From the IMG/VR virus record IMGVR_UViG_3300044712_000810, positions 250,838-314,837 of that record: DNA of 64,000 bases; one strand, given 5' to 3'. A program made the position numbers and the translations under genes. The notes under the pieces are model-generated. The model was not told the DNA's origin. It did no database searches and saw nothing but the letters and a program-made list of their open reading frames with translations. Positions 15,740 to 63,436 of this stretch are shown one piece after another (position 1 is the first letter of the stretch; each line of letters opens with the position of its first letter).

Positions 15740-16015
15740 ATGAGTTATACTAATCTAGCTGAAATAAAAAAACATTTAGCATCAGTTATGATACAATTCA
15801 AAGATGATAATGGTGAATTTAATGTGGATAAAACAAATGTGTTTGAATTACACACATTGATGACAAATACAAAAAAAGATCTTGAAGAATATGCTTTAAA
15901 ATGTTCTGATGATGAAAAACATGATTTAAATATCGGTTTGAATTTGATCAATAATTTTCTCGAAACAACAACAAAAATTATAAATAAAGATATTAAAAAT
16001 ATTAAATTTAATTAG
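15740..16015 (+). CDS. hypothetical protein
   Basis: Operonic ORF. Confidence 0.65.
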   Translation: MSYTNLAEIKKHLASVMIQFKDDNGEFNVDKTNVFELHTLMTNTKKDLEEYALKCSDDEKHDLNIGLNLINNFLETTTKIINKDIKNIKFN

Positions 16016-16024
16016 GAGGCATAT

Positions 16025-16732
16025 ATGCCCCAGACATGGAATAATGTTATTGAATACATCAAGATTAATCTTGGTGGTCCATTAAATATGTTGGAAATCA
16101 ATGATGAAGATTTAGTTAAATTACTTAAAAATCAAGTGTTACCATTCTTTTCACAATACTCACCAGCACAAAAATATACTTATATTACGGACGCCGATAT
16201 GGAAGTAATTGAAAAAGCAGGCGCACCAATGTATATATATAAAATACCGTTGGCAGTAGATGAAAAGATTATTGACATCATTGATGTTTATAATAGTAAA
16301 CAAACAGCATTAGTTGATGCATTTGGTGGAGCAATTGTTACAGCTAGAACTGCAGAAGATTTAGTAATGAGTAACAGTTATATTGATGCCATTCGATCTT
16401 TATCAGTTCGAAATACATGGGAATTCTTTCCACCAAATAGAATAGGTCTAGATGTAGATATTACCGGATGTACAATTGTATATAATACGGTACACGAAAC
16501 ACTCGATACTATTCAACCAGATATGTATGAACTAATGTTTAAAAAATTGTGTCTTGCCAACGTTAAAGTTTGGATTGCAAATATGCGTTCGAAATTTAAC
16601 AACTTGGCGACACCATTTGGTCAAATGGATTTGAATTGGGATAGACTATTACAGGAAGGTCAAACGGAGAAACAGGAAGTTATGGTTGACCTTAATTCAA
16701 TTCCACCAGATCATTTCTTTGAGATTAGTTAA
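16025..16732 (+). CDS. neck/head-completion protein (T4 gp13-like)
   Basis: YIKINLGGPLNMLEI and W...RSKF.....FG.MDLN...L..EG patterns. Confidence 0.65.
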   Translation: MPQTWNNVIEYIKINLGGPLNMLEINDEDLVKLLKNQVLPFFSQYSPAQKYTYITDADMEVIEKAGAPMYIYKIPLAVDEKIIDIIDVYNSKQTALVDAFGGAIVTARTAEDLVMSNSYIDAIRSLSVRNTWEFFPPNRIGLDVDITGCTIVYNTVHETLDTIQPDMYELMFKKLCLANVKVWIANMRSKFNNLATPFGQMDLNWDRLLQEGQTEKQEVMVDLNSIPPDHFFEIS

Positions 16733-23053: not shown

Positions 23054-23314
23054 ATGGTTATTCGCAGATCATTAAGAGGTCGAGGCACACGATTTTATGT
23101 TTGGTTAGATGCTAAAGACTATGTCGCTGGTAACTGGCCAAATTATAGATTTAACTATGATGGTAATCGTCATAGTCCATTAACGTATGAAATTGAAAGA
23201 CCAAAAGATTCTATGCATACGTTAGAAAGAATTGCACGTAATGCCAGAAATGGTGTTAATGCAACTCCAGAACAATATTTAGCAATACAAAAGTTAATAA
23301 TAGAAAATTTGTAG
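23054..23314 (+). CDS. hypothetical protein, C-terminal QKLIIENL
   Basis: Coupled ORF. Confidence 0.65.
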   Translation: MVIRRSLRGRGTRFYVWLDAKDYVAGNWPNYRFNYDGNRHSPLTYEIERPKDSMHTLERIARNARNGVNATPEQYLAIQKLIIENL

Positions 23315-23323
23315 GAGCAGAAA

Positions 23324-23644
23324 ATGAAACTTGATCCTGAACATAATGTTCTTGAAGACAATACAAATATTGTCATGGATCTTTTCAAAGATGTAACCCC
23401 ACCGGAGATTGAACTTACCCCAACTGAACAGATTAAGAAACTAGCATGGGAAGTCGAAATCTATGTTGGTTACAAAGATCATATTTGGAAGACAGAAAAA
23501 CTATATATTGAGAAGAAAATTCCCGATAGTGAATGGATTGATATAATTAGTAAGGTTCTTAGTGAAAGATCAAATAGTGATCAAATTGAATTTTACGGCA
23601 TATATAATTACCCAGAAAACTACGAATCTGAAAAAATTGAATAA
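23324..23644 (+). CDS. hypothetical protein
   Basis: AGGAG SD. Confidence 0.65.
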   Translation: MKLDPEHNVLEDNTNIVMDLFKDVTPPEIELTPTEQIKKLAWEVEIYVGYKDHIWKTEKLYIEKKIPDSEWIDIISKVLSERSNSDQIEFYGIYNYPENYESEKIE

Positions 23645-37929: not shown

Positions 37930-38024
37930 GCTCCAGTAGCTCAATTGGCAGAGCATCCGGCTTATACCCGGCTTAGCGGCTGATTACCGTAAGGTTGTGG
38001 GTTCGATTCCTACCTGGAGTACCA
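37930..38024 (+). tRNA. tRNA with TAT anticodon (Ile-UAU) and long variable arm
   Basis: CCGG-CT TAT AC-CCGG; ~24-nt variable region with GCGG/CCGT stem. Confidence 0.85.
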
Positions 38025-38578: not shown

Positions 38579-39199
38579 ATGCGTGATGATCTGACTGAAA
38601 TCGTATTTATTGTTGATCGTTCCGGTTCAATGGGCATGATTCGTAATGACGTAATCGGTGGATTCAACACATTTATCAAGGATCAAAAAGCTGTTCCTGG
38701 TAATGCAAATGTTAGTTTAATTCAATTCGATGATAAATACGAAGTCAATTATTTGACAAAAGATATTAATCAGGTTGAAGATCTGAATGCTGCTACTTAT
38801 CAGCCTCGTGGAATGACTGCTCTTAATGATGCAATCGGCAAGACTATCATCAGTGTTGGTGATAAACTTGCAAAGATATCTGAGACTGATCGTCCTGGAA
38901 AGGTCGTATTTGTTATCATGACCGATGGACATGAAAATAACAGCAAAGAATATGTTGGTGCCGCAGGTACTGAACAGATTAAAAAGATGATCACACATCA
39001 AAAAGAAAAATATAATTGGGAATTCTTGTTCATCGGCGGAGATCTGGATGTACAGGCAATGGCCCAAACTTATAACTTTGATACAAACAAGGTCCTTTGT
39101 TTTGATAAATCAGCCAAAGGAACTGAAACCATGTACGCCACACTGTCTGCTTCAATCAGCAACTATCGTGGTGGCGCAAAGCTTTCATTCGAAAAATAA
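38579..39199 (+). CDS. vWA domain protein
   Basis: MIDAS DRSGSM, TALNDAIG, TDGHEN. Confidence 0.9.
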   Translation: MRDDLTEIVFIVDRSGSMGMIRNDVIGGFNTFIKDQKAVPGNANVSLIQFDDKYEVNYLTKDINQVEDLNAATYQPRGMTALNDAIGKTIISVGDKLAKISETDRPGKVVFVIMTDGHENNSKEYVGAAGTEQIKKMITHQKEKYNWEFLFIGGDLDVQAMAQTYNFDTNKVLCFDKSAKGTETMYATLSASISNYRGGAKLSFEK

Positions 39200-39210
39200 A
39201 GGAGACCACT

Positions 39211-39264
39211 ATGTGGTAGGTGAAAACTAGTCCACCGTAGGGTAATTCTAGAAGTCCTCCTTAA
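39211..39264 (+). other. amber-containing micro-ORF / leader peptide MW*VKTSPP*GNSRSPP
   Basis: AAGGAG SD 6 nt before ATG; in-frame TAG at 39217 and 39238; TAA at 39262. Confidence 0.55.
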
Positions 39265-39317
39265 TCTAATTGTTGGTTGGTGCAATGCCATCTTAACTTT
39301 TAGACAGGAGAACTACA

Positions 39318-39662
39318 ATGTTTGGTCTTTACGATCTTAAGAATCATCAAATTCGTTTGGCAAAGGCTATTAAAAATAGTAACAACAATAAAATTGGTTA
39401 TTCTGAATTTCAATCAGAACTTGAAGGTTGTAGAAAAATCTACGGCGATAAAGCTTTAAAAAGAGCTTATTATGATGCCAGTTATGAATTCAGACATCAT
39501 CATATCGCATATTGTGAACTTCGCGGCAAAACTCGTGAAATGATTGAAATTCCAGCAGATAATCATTTACCAAACGAAGACTATATTAAGGAAATCAAAA
39601 AATTTTGGCAGGAGAAGATCGATGAAGCTTTACGTGCTCGTCAGGAAAGATCTAACTCCTAG
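39318..39662 (+). CDS. hypothetical protein
   Basis: AGGAG SD; FRHHHIAYCELRGK..E.IE. Confidence 0.75.
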   Translation: MFGLYDLKNHQIRLAKAIKNSNNNKIGYSEFQSELEGCRKIYGDKALKRAYYDASYEFRHHHIAYCELRGKTREMIEIPADNHLPNEDYIKEIKKFWQEKIDEALRARQERSNS

Positions 39663-39909
39663 TCAACAAGCGGTGCAGGCAGGTCATGCAGTCGCTGAAT
39701 ATTTAATTAAAAATACAAACCAATGGACAAACGAAACACTCGTTTATCTTGGAGTTCAAAACTTAGAAGAATTGCATAAGTGGATGCAGAAACTAGATTC
39801 AAAAAACATTGAATACACACAATTCAATGAACCAGATTTAGAAAATCAAGCAACTGCAATCGCTATTTGCAATAACGATAAGGAATTCAAAAAACTAAAA
39901 CTAATTTAA
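39622..39909 (+). CDS. short Pth2-like peptidyl-tRNA hydrolase
   Basis: KLYVLVRKDL...QQAVQAGHA, EPDL..Q.TAIA, LKLI. Confidence 0.75.
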   Translation: MKLYVLVRKDLTPSQQAVQAGHAVAEYLIKNTNQWTNETLVYLGVQNLEELHKWMQKLDSKNIEYTQFNEPDLENQATAIAICNNDKEFKKLKLI

Positions 39910-39984
39910 CTCTGTATAGCTCAGTGGCAGAGCTGGGAACTCTAAATTCCCCGGTCGCGAGTTCGAGTCTCGCTACAGAGGCCA
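39910..39984 (+). tRNA. amber suppressor tRNA (CTA anticodon)
   Basis: Perfect cloverleaf: CTCTGTA/TACAGAG, GGGAA-CT CTA AA-TTCCC, TTCGAGT T loop, G73-CCA. Confidence 0.92.
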
Positions 39985-39988
39985 ATAT

Positions 39989-40253
39989 TAAGTACAACTC
40001 TCCGTAAACCGCTAACATTCAACATCATAGATATTTATTGAAGAATGAAAATATACTTTTATGAAAGTATATTATATTTCTATGATGATCACACGATGAC
40101 AAAATTGAATGTATATGTTTACAAGAGGTCAGGGTAACGAGGCTTTGTTGACAGCCAAAGGCCACGGCTCGAGAAGCTAAGTGTCGACAGTTTATATAAC
40201 TTAGAATTATATTAAAATTTGTCGACGGTTGGTTCGAATCCAACGTGTACTTA
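39989..40253 (+). ncRNA. 265-nt structured RNA with tRNA-like 3' T arm
   Basis: TAAGTACA/TGTACTTA closing stem, GTTGG-TTCGAAT-CCAAC, several nested helices, followed by a terminator. Confidence 0.6.
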
Positions 40254-40258
40254 CAACA

Positions 40259-40282
40259 CGGGATGGTGTAAAAACCATCCCG
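40259..40282 (+). terminator. intrinsic terminator
   Basis: CGGGATGGT-GTAAAA-ACCATCCCG followed by a T tract. Confidence 0.7.
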
Positions 40283-40300
40283 AATTTTTATTATTTCTCT

Positions 40301-60734: not shown

Positions 60735-61238
60735 ATGAAAATAGCATATTCTGGAACTCATGGTACTGGGAAAACAACTAAAGTAAGTAAATTATTTAAC
60801 GAAATTAAAATACAAGAACCTAAAAAAAGTGTCGGATTACTACTAGAAAATGCAAGTTTTAGCCCACTTCCAATAAATAAAGACACTTCCGAATTATCTC
60901 AGTTTTGGATTTTCACAAATCAAATGGCTGAAGAAATTCGTTTACATAATCATTATGACATACTTGTAACTGACCGAAGCATCATGGATGCTATTGCATA
61001 TAGTAAAACAATGGGTTATGATTCATGGAAAGGAATGTTTGAACATGCCAAATATTTCATGAATACTTACAATAGAATATACTATGTAAGCATTGAAAAT
61101 AACGATTATTGGCATAATGATGGTGTTCGAGATGCAGACGATTTAGAATATAGAAGAGATGTTGCAAAAAATCTTTTAGAATTGTATTTAGCATTACTTA
61201 AACGGAAAGACTTCACGTTTAAGTTTGAAATTATATGA
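60735..61238 (+). CDS. P-loop nucleotide kinase-like ATPase (NadR/Ttd14 type)
   Basis: SGTHGTGKTT, TDRSIMDAIAY, DGVR. Confidence 0.8.
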   Translation: MKIAYSGTHGTGKTTKVSKLFNEIKIQEPKKSVGLLLENASFSPLPINKDTSELSQFWIFTNQMAEEIRLHNHYDILVTDRSIMDAIAYSKTMGYDSWKGMFEHAKYFMNTYNRIYYVSIENNDYWHNDGVRDADDLEYRRDVAKNLLELYLALLKRKDFTFKFEII

Positions 61239-61636
61239 ATAAGGAACTTAACTTCTTACTATTCGCATTAACTACGGGAGATCTAAGATATAAAGAAGAA
61301 GACATAGAAGAAGTATTTAAACGACAAGGATTTAACGTCGTCCCAGTTAATGACGATGATAATGGTCCAGGTTTTGAAGTTAATGTTGGAACCCCATCTT
61401 CACTATATCATTTTAATGAAAGAAACTTATGGGGTTACAGCATTACGTTTTATGAAAACACTCCACGGACGAATGTTATTACAATTTGTCCAGAAGTTTT
61501 AAATAACAGTGTATTTTATGACTTTTGGAAAACTGTTATTGATGAATTTATTATTGAAGTGTTGGAACAAACAGATGCTTTTGTTATAGATAATTTTATT
61601 CTGGATTTGAAGAAAATTCTAATTCAAGAAATATAG
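61235..61636 (+). CDS. hypothetical protein, C-terminal LKKILIQEI
   Basis: ATGA-coupled ORF. Confidence 0.7.
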   Translation: MNKELNFLLFALTTGDLRYKEEDIEEVFKRQGFNVVPVNDDDNGPGFEVNVGTPSSLYHFNERNLWGYSITFYENTPRTNVITICPEVLNNSVFYDFWKTVIDEFIIEVLEQTDAFVIDNFILDLKKILIQEI

Positions 61637-61645
61637 GTGGAAATA

Positions 61646-63436
61646 ATGGCAAGTTTATCATCAAATATAACTTTAGATGAGTTATATACAAAACTACGTA
61701 CAGGTTCAAAAATAACCGATAAAATATCATACAGTAGCAAAAAGACTGATGGAAAAGCAATGCGCATGTCCATTGGTAGAGTAATAGTTAATGAAATATT
61801 ACCTGAAGACTTTGAATTAGTCAACGAAGTACTTAATGCAAAAGTTCAAAGTAAAATATTTAAGAAACTATTTGATAAATATGGACCAAAACAAGCTGGT
61901 GATATATTATCGGAATTACAACTTGAAATGTTTAAAATGGCATCAATGATTCCAAGTTCATTTAATATTAATGGTCTTACATTTCCTGATGAATTTAAAG
62001 CCATGAAAGATGATTTTAAATCAAAAGCAAAAGACATGTCATTAAATGAATATAATAAAGAAACAGACAAACTAACAAAATACTTACTTGACTATACTGA
62101 TGGTCAAGACCTTCGTGTTAATAACTTAATGAAATCCGGTGTAAAAGGCGATCCCATTAGTGACTGGAAGAACTTAATGGTTGCCAAAGGTTTTGTTATT
62201 GATATTGAAGGAAATATTAAAGGCCCGATTCTGAATGGTGTGGCCGAAGGTTTTAGTCGGAAAGCTTATTATGATGCTGCGGCAGAAGCAAGACGTGACT
62301 TCTTCTATAAAAGTACAATGTCTGCGGAACCAGGTTATCTTGCACGTAAGATTGTTATGGCAAACTCAAACATCGTAATTGATCCTAAAACCAAAGATTG
62401 CGAAACAAAAAAATATTATGAATTATATGTCAATAATAAGAATAAGAATATTATTATTGGAAGAACATATAATAAGAATGGTAGATTAACTAAGATTACA
62501 GAAGATAATGTTGATGATTTAGTTAATAATCCAATAAAGTTAAGATCACCATTATACTGCAAAGCTGAAAATGGAATTTGTCAAACATGTTACGGTGATT
62601 TATTTAAATCATTAGATACATCTGCTATTGGTGTTCTTGCAGGTGGTGCGGTAAACAAAGTAGCACTTAACGATATGATGAAAATGAAACACAAAGCATC
62701 ACAAGTTAACGTTGTTGACATTGACTTTATTGATATTATCAAGAAATCTCGTCTTGATCTTAAAGAACTATCACAATATCTTGATATTGAAAAGAAAGAA
62801 ATCAAAGCAAAAGTCGAATTAAGTTTTACAATTGATAAGAATGATTATAAAGAAGAAACTGAATTTTTAGATTGCGGTGAATACTTCGCAACTCCTGGTA
62901 TGTTAGACTTTGAAGTTGGTATTCCACCAAATATTACATCATTTACATTACCATTTGCATTTAAATTAGATCTTTATAAACCACAAGATATTGAAGGCGA
63001 AGGTAAAATAATCAAATTGCATTATAAGCCAGGTGAAACTATTACCAAAATGAATATGTATGTTGAGGAAGTCGATCCAGGCGTTCTTAACAGACTATTT
63101 GATGGTGGTGCAAAATATATTAAAACACCTGAAGGTCTTGTTGAAATTATTAGTGGACGTATTCCAAGCGTTGACTTATGTCACATCGAAACCATTGTCG
63201 CAAACATGTTTAGACGTGCGGATGATGATTCTGAACCTTGTAGAAAACGTGGCGATTATAAAAACGCAGTAATATATGGTCAAAAGAAACTTCCATTTAT
63301 TACATCATGGTTAACAAGTTTAAGTTTCGAAAACGTAAATAAGGCTATTGAATACGGATTAATTTCCGGTAAACATGCTAACTTCGATCCTTTTGAAAAG
63401 ATCGTACTTGAAAAGTTTGGTGGAGGAGAAGTTTAA
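61646..63436 (+). CDS. rpoC: RNA polymerase beta' subunit, C-terminal part
   Basis: SIGRVIVNEILP, SGVKG, AEPGYLARK (bridge helix), LRSPLYC..GICQTCYG, SWL..LSFE. Confidence 0.9.
   Translation: MASLSSNITLDELYTKLRTGSKITDKISYSSKKTDGKAMRMSIGRVIVNEILPEDFELVNEVLNAKVQSKIFKKLFDKYGPKQAGDILSELQLEMFKMASMIPSSFNINGLTFPDEFKAMKDDFKSKAKDMSLNEYNKETDKLTKYLLDYTDGQDLRVNNLMKSGVKGDPISDWKNLMVAKGFVIDIEGNIKGPILNGVAEGFSRKAYYDAAAEARRDFFYKSTMSAEPGYLARKIVMANSNIVIDPKTKDCETKKYYELYVNNKNKNIIIGRTYNKNGRLTKITEDNVDDLVNNPIKLRSPLYCKAENGICQTCYGDLFKSLDTSAIGVLAGGAVNKVALNDMMKMKHKASQVNVVDIDFIDIIKKSRLDLKELSQYLDIEKKEIKAKVELSFTIDKNDYKEETEFLDCGEYFATPGMLDFEVGIPPNITSFTLPFAFKLDLYKPQDIEGEGKIIKLHYKPGETITKMNMYVEEVDPGVLNRLFDGGAKYIKTPEGLVEIISGRIPSVDLCHIETIVANMFRRADDDSEPCRKRGDYKNAVIYGQKKLPFITSWLTSLSFENVNKAIEYGLISGKHANFDPFEKIVLEKFGGGEV

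Follow-up and report, generated by a model that had tools for sequence, protein, structure and literature searches.

A putative stop-codon-gated stalling leader lies beside an amber-suppressor tRNA in a giant phage and recurs in dozens of uncultured phages

Ribosome arrest peptides of the RAPP/RGPP type (ApdA, ApdP, ApcA, and SecM with RAGP) carry a C-terminal R-[A/G/S]-P-P core in a small upstream ORF, close to its stop codon, and the regulated gene lies downstream on the same strand. The known ones are long secreted or membrane "monitoring substrates" that sense Sec or YidC activity. RGPP and RAPP are the strongest, EF-P-resistant arrest motifs, while RSPP and RDPP are partly permissive, although RSPP was also recovered in random arrest screens (PMC12992588), and the stalled state has been described (PMC10951233). 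In the translation attenuation of ermC, ermB, and cat, the ribosome that pauses in a short SD-led leader appears to melt a hairpin sequestering the SD of the next gene, the pause requiring an antibiotic bound in the exit tunnel. In the autoregulation of prfB, an early in-frame UGA probably acts as a kinetic sensor of termination capacity, RF2 being reported by +1 frameshifting within the gene itself. Engineered leader peptides containing UAG, built on tna or trp attenuators, make downstream expression dependent on amber suppression by unnatural amino acids (reviewed in PMC6412442). In phages, suppressor tRNAs clustered with an aaRS and a release factor form the "code change module" of stop-codon-recoded genomes, proposed to switch decoding during infection (10.1101/2021.08.26.457843), "orphan" amber suppressors without known target occur in standard-code jumbo phages (XacN1, PMC5852040), and Pth2-like peptidyl-tRNA hydrolases (PF01981) have been noted in jumbo phages (PMC7824862).

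Here, we analysed a locus in a 64,000-nt stretch (the window) of IMG/VR record IMGVR_UViG_3300044712_000810, where an SD-led leader ORF with two in-frame TAG codons and two Pro-Pro units precedes a 114-aa gene, a gene for a predicted Pth2-fold protein, a tRNA(CUA), a structured RNA with a tRNA-type T-arm, and a terminator-like hairpin (Table 1). Every element noticed in the first-pass annotation was found to be present. Compared with the RAPP-type arrest peptides, the leader shares the RxPP core and the downstream gene whose SD is predicted to be masked by a hairpin that a stalled ribosome would open, but its peptide, like those of the related loci, has only 10–20 residues and no signal sequence, and the leader in the window, with 17 codons, contains no hydrophobic segment. 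Thus, it would work like an arrest leader but it is not a Sec/YidC monitoring substrate. Its input would be the decoding of in-frame stop codons placed before the arrest motif, and the genes downstream encode a predicted Pth2-fold protein and an unknown partner next to a suppressor tRNA in a phage. In contrast to the erm and cat leaders, the condition here would be passage through TAG and the pause would be intrinsic to RxPP, and in contrast to prfB, the escape would be due to a dedicated suppressor tRNA, with a separate leader as sensor and an arrest peptide plus an SD hairpin as read-out. The logic resembles that of the engineered UAG leaders, but the present design is natural, widespread, and tied to its own tRNA. 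The report on the code change module mentions no hydrolase and describes neither a leader nor a sensor.

Table 1. Features of the leader–tRNA(CUA) locus (positions in the 64,000-nt window)
Position	Strand	Feature	Details
39199..39204	+	Shine-Dalgarno sequence of the leader ORF	AAGGAG, 6 nt before the ATG; its first A is the last base of the TAA of the preceding gene
39211..39264	+	Leader ORF	M-W-TAG-V-K-T-S-P-P-TAG-G-N-S-R-S-P-P-TAA; amber codons at 39217-39219 and 39238-39240; RSPP motif (AGA AGT CCT CCT) at 39250-39261; TAA at 39262-39264
39253..39314	+	Predicted hairpin pairing the SD of the next gene	5′ arm includes the Pro-Pro codons (CCUCC, 39256-39260); 3′ arm includes AGGAG (39306-39310), 7 nt before ATG 39318
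39318..39662	+	"HHH" gene, 114 aa	Motif FRHHHIAYCELRG.TRE.IE.P; basic, predicted all-helical protein of unknown function; stop codon TAG
39622..39909	+	Predicted Pth2-fold gene, 95 aa	Overlaps the HHH gene by 41 nt; TAA stop abuts the tRNA
39910..39984	+	tRNA(CUA), amber-suppressor anticodon	75 nt; short variable loop; encoded CCA; discriminator G
39990..40253	+	Structured RNA (265-nt RNA)	Closing stem 39990-39996 paired with 40246-40252; tRNA-type T-arm at 40228-40244
40259..40290	+	Intrinsic-terminator-like hairpin and T-run	9 bp, 6 of them G-C; likely 3′-end of the transcription unit

To determine whether this arrangement is conserved, homologs of the HHH gene were collected, which yielded 112 loci and a family of 1493 clusters at 50% identity. 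Of 74 distinct loci with enough downstream sequence, 67 had the Pth2-like gene and 61 had tRNA(CUA) in the same order and on one strand, with overlapping ORFs and a median gap of 7 nt between the stop of the Pth2-like gene and the tRNA. In addition, HHH and the Pth2-like domain were found fused in three proteins (P0005, P0075, and P0136). No cultured relative was found: the HHH protein gave no match among phage isolates and only four MAG contigs among 185,579 species genomes, while a DNA similarity search of 50,697 phage records gave no near match, the distant search hitting only the NAMPT gene. ORFs on the minus strand under the region had no family match.

The leader was examined in the same way. 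In 62 of 87 distinct loci the HHH gene was preceded by a start codon, 1–9 codons, TAG, an open frame, and then Pro-Pro, whereas this design occurred in 0 of 87 reverse complements and, on average, in 0.12 of 87 shuffled sequences. An SD-like motif was found within 20 nt upstream of the start in 59 of 65 related leaders, two codons preceded the first TAG in 43 of 65, and 31 of 65 contained two TAGs. The endings were mostly RGPP (21), RSPP (9), or RAPP (6), all of which are published arrest motifs, besides [YLF]KPP (12) and RDPP (1). About a quarter of the loci had variant endings (R-G-S-P-stop, R-S-P-stop, K-P-P-stop), whose arrest behaviour is not documented in the papers we read. The first-pass annotation had emphasised a repeated SPP unit, however, the conserved peptide unit proved to be R-x-P-P (RSPP in the window), which is accompanied in about half of the loci by an earlier x-P-P-TAG unit. 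The window leader contains a 21–24-nt direct repeat (GTAGG..CTAG..TCC[AT]CC) and two palindromes (ACTAGT and TCTAGA), which could point to a chance ORF or to a purely RNA- or DNA-level element such as a protein-binding repeat or a processing site. This possibility seems remote, since it is contradicted by the controls, by the frame and codon statistics described below, and by the recurrence of the two-unit form with different nucleotides in six of the loci (L085, L086, L090, L094, L138, and L152).

The TAG gate and the CCNCCN were in the same frame in 60 of 63 loci (21 expected), and the frame was open in 58 of those 60, although the spacing varied between 3 and 32 codons. Arg of the motif was encoded by AGA or AGG (29) as well as by CGT or CGA (10), and Ser by AGY (7) as well as by TCN (2), and the context of the gate was conserved as ACR-TAG-RTT. 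These data support, although only by comparison, translation through TAG. Alternatively, the two-codon ORF (M-x-stop) might work alone as a minigene, comparable with the lambda bar minigenes, which would cause peptidyl-tRNA drop-off and load Pth, and the RxPP stretch would be translated separately or act only as the anti-SD RNA. The two codons before the first TAG in most leaders, the Pth-type gene downstream, and the fact that CCUCC of the Pro-Pro codons is also the anti-SD, so that part of its conservation is at the RNA level, are in line with this model. Nevertheless, it appears very unlikely, because the codon following TAG is ATT, GTT, or ATA, which are not efficient starts, and the SD would be located too far upstream. 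Moreover, the frame is maintained despite the variable spacing, the Arg at −4 uses both codon families, 22 of 65 leaders have 3–8 codons before the TAG, 31 have a second TAG preceded by Pro-Pro, and the stop codon changes together with the tRNA anticodon in Lak phages (see below).

Folding of the leader region of the window predicted a hairpin between the Pro-Pro codons and the SD of HHH (MFE fold, z = −2.9 to −4.4). In the relatives, the SD was paired in 57 of 59 loci, and in 53 of 59 its partners were inside the footprint of a ribosome stalled on Pro-Pro (mean z = −4.3), while the stem sequences differed between loci. When a ribosome was simulated in the window by masking, its placement at either TAG left the hairpin closed, but a ribosome on CCT 39256 freed GGAG. 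It should be noted that longer-range alternative pairings appeared in the window when more flanking sequence was folded.

The tRNA was identified by ARAGORN and by Rfam (RF00005, 63.3 bits against a gathering score of 29). Its anticodon loop reads CU-CUA-AA, with U33 and a purine at position 37, and the same loop was seen in 65 distinct tRNAs of the module, which are otherwise very diverse, having A, G, or U as discriminator. The tRNA has no close paralog among the 26 other tRNAs of the window. Leader and tRNA(CUA) co-occurred (48, 1, 8, and 4 loci in the four cells, Fisher p = 0.004), and three HHH loci lacking both the Pth2-like gene and the tRNA also lacked the leader. Interestingly, gate codon and anticodon changed together in Lak megaphages: Lak-A2 and Lak-B5 have tRNA(UUA) with a TAA-GTT gate followed in frame by S-R-G-S-P or D-R-G-P, the Arg codon being AGA in one and CGT in the other, and an inverted repeat covers the next start region, although homology of the Lak 128-aa ORF to HHH was not detected. 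Furthermore, 27 Pth2-like genes carried exactly one in-frame stop, always TAG and mostly in one variable loop, which would be a second amber gate.

Since relatives such as the Lak megaphages are reported as stop-codon recoded (10.1101/2021.08.26.457843) and Pth2-like genes can contain an in-frame TAG, TAG might be an ordinary sense codon in these phages, as in code 15. In this case, the leader would simply be an RxPP arrest leader, constitutive or relieved by its products, with incidental TAGs. However, TAG ended 14 of 82 long plus-strand ORFs of the window, and ORF coverage was 0.81 under code 11 and 0.85 with TAG as sense, a smaller gain than with TGA (0.87) or TAA (0.92) as sense. A virion structural gene of the window is intact in the standard code, the 5-kb flanks of related loci are not TAG-recoded, and contig positions 231.5–251 kb are densely coded in the standard code. 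Three TAG-ended ORFs in frame with the next gene (15740/16025, 23054/23324, and 61235/61637) gave no support for programmed read-through, as their number was that expected by chance and the PHROG match of 16025-16732 starts at its own N-terminus. TAG recoding was thus not seen in the 83 kb examined of this 315-kb genome, but the remaining 231 kb of contig Ga0453684_0000144 were not examined, and two 10-kb steps along the contig reached no block of structural genes, and late genes were not seen. A rare sense codon would not be fixed at one place, codon 3 in 43 of 65 leaders, and in one context, and the in-frame stops of the Pth2-like genes number exactly one per gene and cluster in one loop. 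Even in a recoded phage, an early TAG would still act as a gate until the suppressor accumulates. Considering these data, which cover only 83 kb of this genome, recoding seems an unlikely explanation.

The 95-aa protein passed the Pfam PF01981 cut-off (27.5 bits against 23) and matched phrog_1866 and phrog_3668. Its AF2 model (pLDDT 95.2) matched only Pth2 structures, as the top 15 Foldseek hits in PDB were all of this kind (E-values from 1e-6 to 1e-2, TM 0.63–0.81; TM 0.71–0.81 to 2zv3, 1wn2, 3erj, 1xty, and 1q7s). On the other hand, it is about 20 residues shorter than archaeal and eukaryotic Pth2 and reached only 17.3 bits against the cut-off of 126 for the NCBIfam equivalog PRK04322, hence it belongs to a divergent subfamily and is not an equivalog. 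Q19, H22, E70, and D72 are invariant and the Q..HA motif is conserved, but in the profile alignment to 2zv3 the loop is two residues shorter and lacks the conserved Lys of the GKGK loop of archaeal Pth2, while the invariant E70 aligns with the catalytic Asp. The missing Lys and the low NCBIfam score make hydrolase activity and substrate uncertain. For HHH (AF2 pLDDT 86.7, helical), searches of Pfam, PHROGs, and NCBIfam and a PDB profile search gave nothing, Foldseek gave no PDB hit below E = 0.5, and only two uncharacterised phage proteins were found in BFVD.

The 265-nt RNA folded far better than shuffled sequences (z = −6.1), and its T-arm matched a pattern that had 20 hits in the window, 19 in tRNA genes plus this one, against 0.22 expected. 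Neither Rfam, at gathering or E-value thresholds, nor ARAGORN identified it as a tmRNA or an intron-containing tRNA. At lowered stringency only a poor pseudo-tRNA was seen at 40158-40254, and the third pair of the stem is G-C instead of the G3:U70 pair of tmRNA. Rfam found nothing for the leader either. As blastn and nhmmer detected no homolog of the RNA in 170 loci, it is specific to this window and is not a conserved member of the module, although the first-pass annotation had counted it as part of the module. The terminator scan detected the following hairpin plus T-run at 40259-40282, and the hairpin was also seen in the fold of the RNA.

Considering these results, the proposal of the first-pass annotation that the micro-ORF is the substrate or sensor of the suppressor is the best-supported reading, and the comparison of homologous loci, which could have refuted it, gave the opposite result. 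With moderate confidence, and on comparative evidence only, we suggest that the region is a suppression-gated translational switch in a conserved phage operon. If release factor 1 wins at TAG (codon 3, and again codon 10 in this phage), the ribosome would leave, the hairpin would stay closed, and HHH and the Pth2-like gene would not be translated. If the charged tRNA(CUA) decodes the TAGs, the ribosome would reach R-S-P-P and stall, covering the 5′ arm of the hairpin and freeing the SD, by which HHH would be translated and the Pth2-like protein would follow by translational coupling through the overlapping ORFs. Two TAGs in series would make the response steeper. Read-through, stalling, and SD unmasking are all predicted, and RSPP, the stalling of which is untested in a nascent peptide of only 17 residues, is a weaker motif than RGPP or RAPP.

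The output is most likely an HHH/Pth2-like complex that hydrolyses peptidyl-tRNA and is made only when stop-codon read-through is active, to clear the stalled or dropped-off products that suppression creates. It may also release the arrested leader itself, which would close the loop. This role, similar to the recycling function proposed in the first-pass annotation, is still an inference, and nothing in our data speaks to the anti-defence function also proposed there. It is also possible, though doubtful, that the pair acts with the opposite sign, hydrolysing aminoacyl- or peptidyl-tRNA(CUA), so that read-through of the leader caps suppression as in a homeostat. The linkage of the Pth2-like gene to this one tRNA and not to the 26 other tRNA genes of the window, the loss of the canonical Lys loop, which suggests an altered substrate or mechanism, and the basic helical, sometimes fused partner, which could give tRNA specificity, are in line with this model. 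However, Pth2-fold genes also occur in jumbo phages without an adjacent suppressor tRNA, such as RAS14 and XacN1 (ORF364), which argues for a general role, and the tight spacing could equally reflect co-transcription and RNase P processing.

In the literature searched, no paper links a suppressor tRNA, a Pth2 gene, and an amber-containing leader. It is somewhat more likely than not that the module is a natural sensor of the genetic-code state, in which the stop codons of the leader are matched to a linked suppressor tRNA (TAG with CUA, TAA with UUA), report how well the infected cell reads that codon as sense, and switch on a dedicated two-protein unit that manages the consequences of suppression or sets its level. 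If so, it would be the first natural leader peptide known to sense stop-codon reassignment and the first arrest-peptide switch in a phage, and the design could also serve as a compact natural part for synthetic genetic-code-expansion circuits. Phage-encoded suppressor tRNAs are common, but how and when an infected cell changes its reading of a stop codon is still an open question, for which the module would offer a handle by supplying a concrete, conserved first target for the suppressor, the leader of its own operon. It would extend RAPP-type arrest peptides, so far tied to protein export and a few bacterial operons, to viruses and to a new input, the competition between termination and suppression. 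It also points to a widespread, unannotated protein family that appears to work with a divergent Pth2, a partnership that may reveal how cells or phages cope with read-through products.

The contig (IMGVR_UViG_3300044712_000810, 314,837 bp, also recorded as Ga0453684_0000144) belongs to a jumbo phage that has phiKZ-type split multisubunit RNA polymerase genes, DNA ligase, ribonucleotide reductase and NAMPT, and no phage in GenBank is close to it at the DNA level. An HNH endonuclease gene lies between two fragments of the RNA polymerase beta-prime-like genes. The window carries 27 tRNA genes, which cover 19 amino acids plus amber, tRNA-Asn being the only one missing, and one of them, called Ile(UAU), is unusual for an Ile tRNA because of its length and an insertion of about 20 nt in the variable region. 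The leader sequence reported in the first-pass annotation proved to be exact, and the elements described there downstream of it were also found. The features are collected in the table below.

Coordinates of the features of the module, of neighboring elements and of related loci (L165, L176, L010, L023 and L169 denote individual loci retrieved in this work)
Feature	Record	Position	Remarks
Leader SD	window	39199-39204	AAGGAG
Leader ORF	window	ATG 39211 to TAA 39262	ATG, TGG, TAG (39217), GTG AAA ACT AGT CCA CCG, TAG (39238), GGT AAT TCT AGA AGT CCT CCT, TAA
SD of the HHH gene	window	39306-39310	AGGAG, 7 nt before the HHH ATG
Possible long-range pairing	window	39201-39208 with 39323-39330	leader SD region (GGAGACCA) with codons 2-4 of the HHH gene (UGGUCUUU)
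HHH gene	window	39318-39662	114 aa, stop codon TAG at 39660-39662; the next in-frame stop is a TGA at 39696-39698
Pth2-like gene	window	39622-39909	95 aa, overlaps the HHH gene, stop codon TAA
tRNA(CUA)	window	39910-39984	starts at the base after the TAA of the Pth2-like gene
Structured RNA	window	39990-40253	264 nt; closing stem 39990-39996 paired with 40246-40252; T-arm 40228-40244
Terminator-like hairpin	window	40259-40282	
tRNA genes	window	24807-54883	27 genes
tRNA called Ile(UAU)	window	37930-38024	95 nt
Virion structural gene	window	16025-16732	intact
ORFs ending in TAG and in frame with the next gene	window	15740-16732, 23054-23644, 61235-63436	including a virion structural protein and an RNA polymerase beta fragment
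HNH endonuclease gene	L169	2199-2909	contig 243.4-244.1 kb
Leader with TAA gate and adjacent genes	L165 (Lak-A2)	1734-2790	
Leader with TAA gate and adjacent genes	L176 (Lak-B5)	841-1560	
tmRNA-like gene called by ARAGORN	L010	222-597	within 3 kb upstream of the Pth2-like gene
tmRNA-like gene called by ARAGORN	L023	1356-1751	within 3 kb upstream of the Pth2-like gene

The 95-aa protein passes the Pfam PTH2 threshold, and with an alignment of 47 relatives it gave a confident model (pLDDT 95.2), whose best 15 PDB matches are all Pth2 structures. However, it is a divergent Pth2. A profile alignment to the M. jannaschii Pth2 showed that the Q..HA motif is kept and that an invariant Glu sits where the catalytic Asp lies, while the GKGK loop is shorter and has no conserved lysine, and the NCBIfam equivalog score is far below its cut-off. 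The 114-aa protein, called HHH after its FRHHHIAYCELRG.TRE.IE.P motif, is basic (pI 8.8) and predicted to be all-helical (pLDDT 86.7), but it has no match in Pfam, PHROGs, NCBIfam, PDB sequences or PDB folds. The HHH family is large, with 1493 clusters at 50% identity, although it is absent from cultured phages and among 185,579 species genomes it hits only four MAG contigs. Interestingly, three family members of about 195 aa (the representative proteins P0005, P0075 and P0136, 194-199 aa) are single polypeptides with an N-terminal HHH domain and a C-terminal Pth2-like domain, which, together with the overlapping ORFs, supports a joint function of the two proteins. The HHH gene of this phage ends in TAG; suppression would extend it by 11 codons, whereas in relatives the HHH stop is mostly TAA. 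Minus-strand ORFs under the region match no family.

To examine the conservation of the module, viral and metagenome contigs were searched with the Pth2-like protein and with an HHH alignment, which resulted in 160 loci. Of 74 distinct loci with at least 600 nt after the HHH stop, 67 have the Pth2-like gene and 61 have a tRNA(CUA) after it, and the median gap from the Pth2-like stop to the tRNA 5′ end is 7 nt. CUA is by far the commonest anticodon in these loci, with 85 genes against 12 for the next. In 39 of 61 module loci the Pth2-like stop codon lies within 10 nt of the tRNA 5′ end, and in one locus (L016) the ORF, as extended computationally, overlaps the tRNA by 10 nt. RNase P processing would therefore leave the mRNA ending at or inside its stop codon, which hints at an interplay between tRNA maturation and termination of the Pth2-like ORF.

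The 150 nt upstream of the HHH start hold the design SD, ATG, 1-9 codons, TAG, an open frame, then Pro-Pro in 62 of 87 distinct loci, while it occurs in 0 of 87 reverse complements and in a mean of 0.12 of 87 shuffles. The last four residues are RGPP (21), RSPP (9), RAPP (6) or [YLF]KPP (12), and two codons precede the first TAG in 43 of 65 leaders. Two TAGs are present in 31 of 65 leaders, where the first unit ends x-P-P-TAG, exactly as in the window. Several loci without Pro-Pro end in R-G-S-P-stop, R-S-P-stop or R-G-P-stop, as read by eye. Three results indicated that selection acts on a translated frame running through the stop codon, although read-through itself is inferred. First, among 63 loci with both a gate and a later CCNCCN, 60 have them in the same frame, against 21 expected, and in 58 of those 60 there is no TAA or TGA between them, even though the spacing varies from 3 to 32 codons. 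Second, Arg is encoded by AGA or AGG in 29 leaders and by CGT or CGA in 10, and Ser uses both AGY and TCN. Third, the context ACR-TAG-RTT is conserved at both gates, and a purine following UAG probably favors suppression.

The putative stall site appears to be connected to the ribosome-binding site of the next gene. In the window, CCUCC of the Pro-Pro codons pairs with the AGGAG of the HHH gene in the predicted fold. Across relatives, the SD of the HHH gene is paired in the minimum-energy fold in 57 of 59 loci, and in 53 of 59 its partners lie within the stretch covered by a ribosome whose P site is on the first Pro codon. The mean z against dinucleotide shuffles is −4.3, and the stems differ in sequence from locus to locus. 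In constraint folding of the window, a ribosome sitting at TAG1 or TAG2 left the hairpin closed, while a ribosome on CCT 39256 freed GGAG. When more flank was folded, the SD region of the leader paired with the beginning of the HHH gene, which may be a long-range clamp or may be due to chance.

RAPP and RGPP are the most potent, EF-P-resistant arrest cores, while RDPP and RSPP are partly permissive and under-represented in proteomes, and RSPP came out of random arrest screens in E. coli (PMC12992588). PTH2 genes were noted in jumbo phages and proposed to help ribosome rescue (PMC7824862), and a "code change module" of suppressor tRNA, aaRS and release factor was described in recoded phages (10.1101/2021.08.26.457843). 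The authors of the XacN1 genome could find no target for its tRNA(CUA) genes (PMC5852040). Engineered UAG leaders exist in synthetic biology (PMC6412442), but neither the former papers nor our full-text literature searches linked a suppressor tRNA, a Pth2 gene and a stop-codon-containing arrest leader.

The strongest single test was provided by loci where the gate codon changes together with the anticodon. In the Prevotella megaphages Lak-A2 and Lak-B5 the arrangement is tRNA(UUA), then the leader, then a 128-aa ORF, then the Pth2-like gene, and the in-frame stop of the leader is TAA instead of TAG. The 128-aa ORF is not detectably related to HHH (hhalign probability 3.6). The Lak-A2 leader reads M-K-L-Q-H-W-TAA-V-T-L-S-R-G-S-P, while the Lak-B5 leader reads M-E-L-Q-H-W-TAA-V-T-C-D-R-G-P-TAA. 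The stop is followed by the same GTT context, Arg is AGA in one leader and CGT in the other, and an inverted repeat covers the next start region. Conversely, three HHH loci with neither a Pth2-like gene nor a tRNA(CUA) lack the leader, and leader and tRNA co-occur overall (48, 1, 8 and 4 loci in the four cells; p = 0.004).

In 27 loci the Pth2-like gene itself holds exactly one in-frame stop, which is always TAG and lies mostly in the same variable loop just before the invariant Trp, although the flanking 5 kb look like standard code. This looks like a second amber gate. The gene of the window has none, while in Lak-A2 the Pth2-like ORF begins ATG AAT TAG. Recoding of TAG in the window phage was not seen in the examined part of the contig, that is, the window and another 20 kb upstream, which is densely coded in the standard code. 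TAG ends 14 of 82 ORFs, reading TAG as sense adds less coverage than reading TGA or TAA as sense, extensions after TAG are not clearly shorter than after TGA, and a virion structural gene is intact. Three ORFs that end in TAG are in frame with the next gene, but their number is as expected by chance and the downstream proteins look complete on their own. As these data do not extend to the other 231 kb, a late-gene role for the suppressor remains possible.

The RNA downstream of the tRNA, about 265 nt, is highly structured (z = −6.1) and is shaped like an oversized tRNA, with an acceptor-like closing stem, a perfect T-arm and three long internal hairpins in place of the D and anticodon arms, but without CCA. 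The T-arm is of a genuine tRNA type. The T-loop pattern has 20 hits in the window, 19 in tRNA genes plus this one, against 0.22 expected. Although it is real as a structure, it has no Rfam family, no tmRNA or intron-tRNA call and no counterpart in any related locus. It was left unexplained and outside the conserved module.

Considering these results, we concluded that the best explanation is an amber-gated arrest leader. According to this model, termination at TAG means the OFF state, while suppression carries the ribosome to RSPP, where it stalls, opens the hairpin and allows translation of HHH and, by coupling, of the Pth2-like protein, and two gates in series sharpen the response. The conservation, the frame, the pairing and the joint change of gate codon and anticodon were observed, whereas actual read-through, stalling of a 17-residue RSPP peptide and control by the hairpin are inferred. 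The output is the weakest part of the model. A suppression-induced peptidyl-tRNA hydrolase or rescue unit, possibly one that also releases the arrested leader, is favored, although the exclusive linkage to this tRNA and the altered active-site loop suggest the alternative of a homeostat acting on the suppressor tRNA itself. The proposal of the first-pass annotation that the micro-ORF serves as the substrate or sensor of the suppressor is supported by the test proposed there, namely the search for the leader and the tRNA(CUA) linkage in homologous loci. Regulation by an arrest peptide that unmasks an SD is already known, while the inferred input (stop-codon suppression by a linked tRNA), the phage setting and the regulated pair appear to be new.
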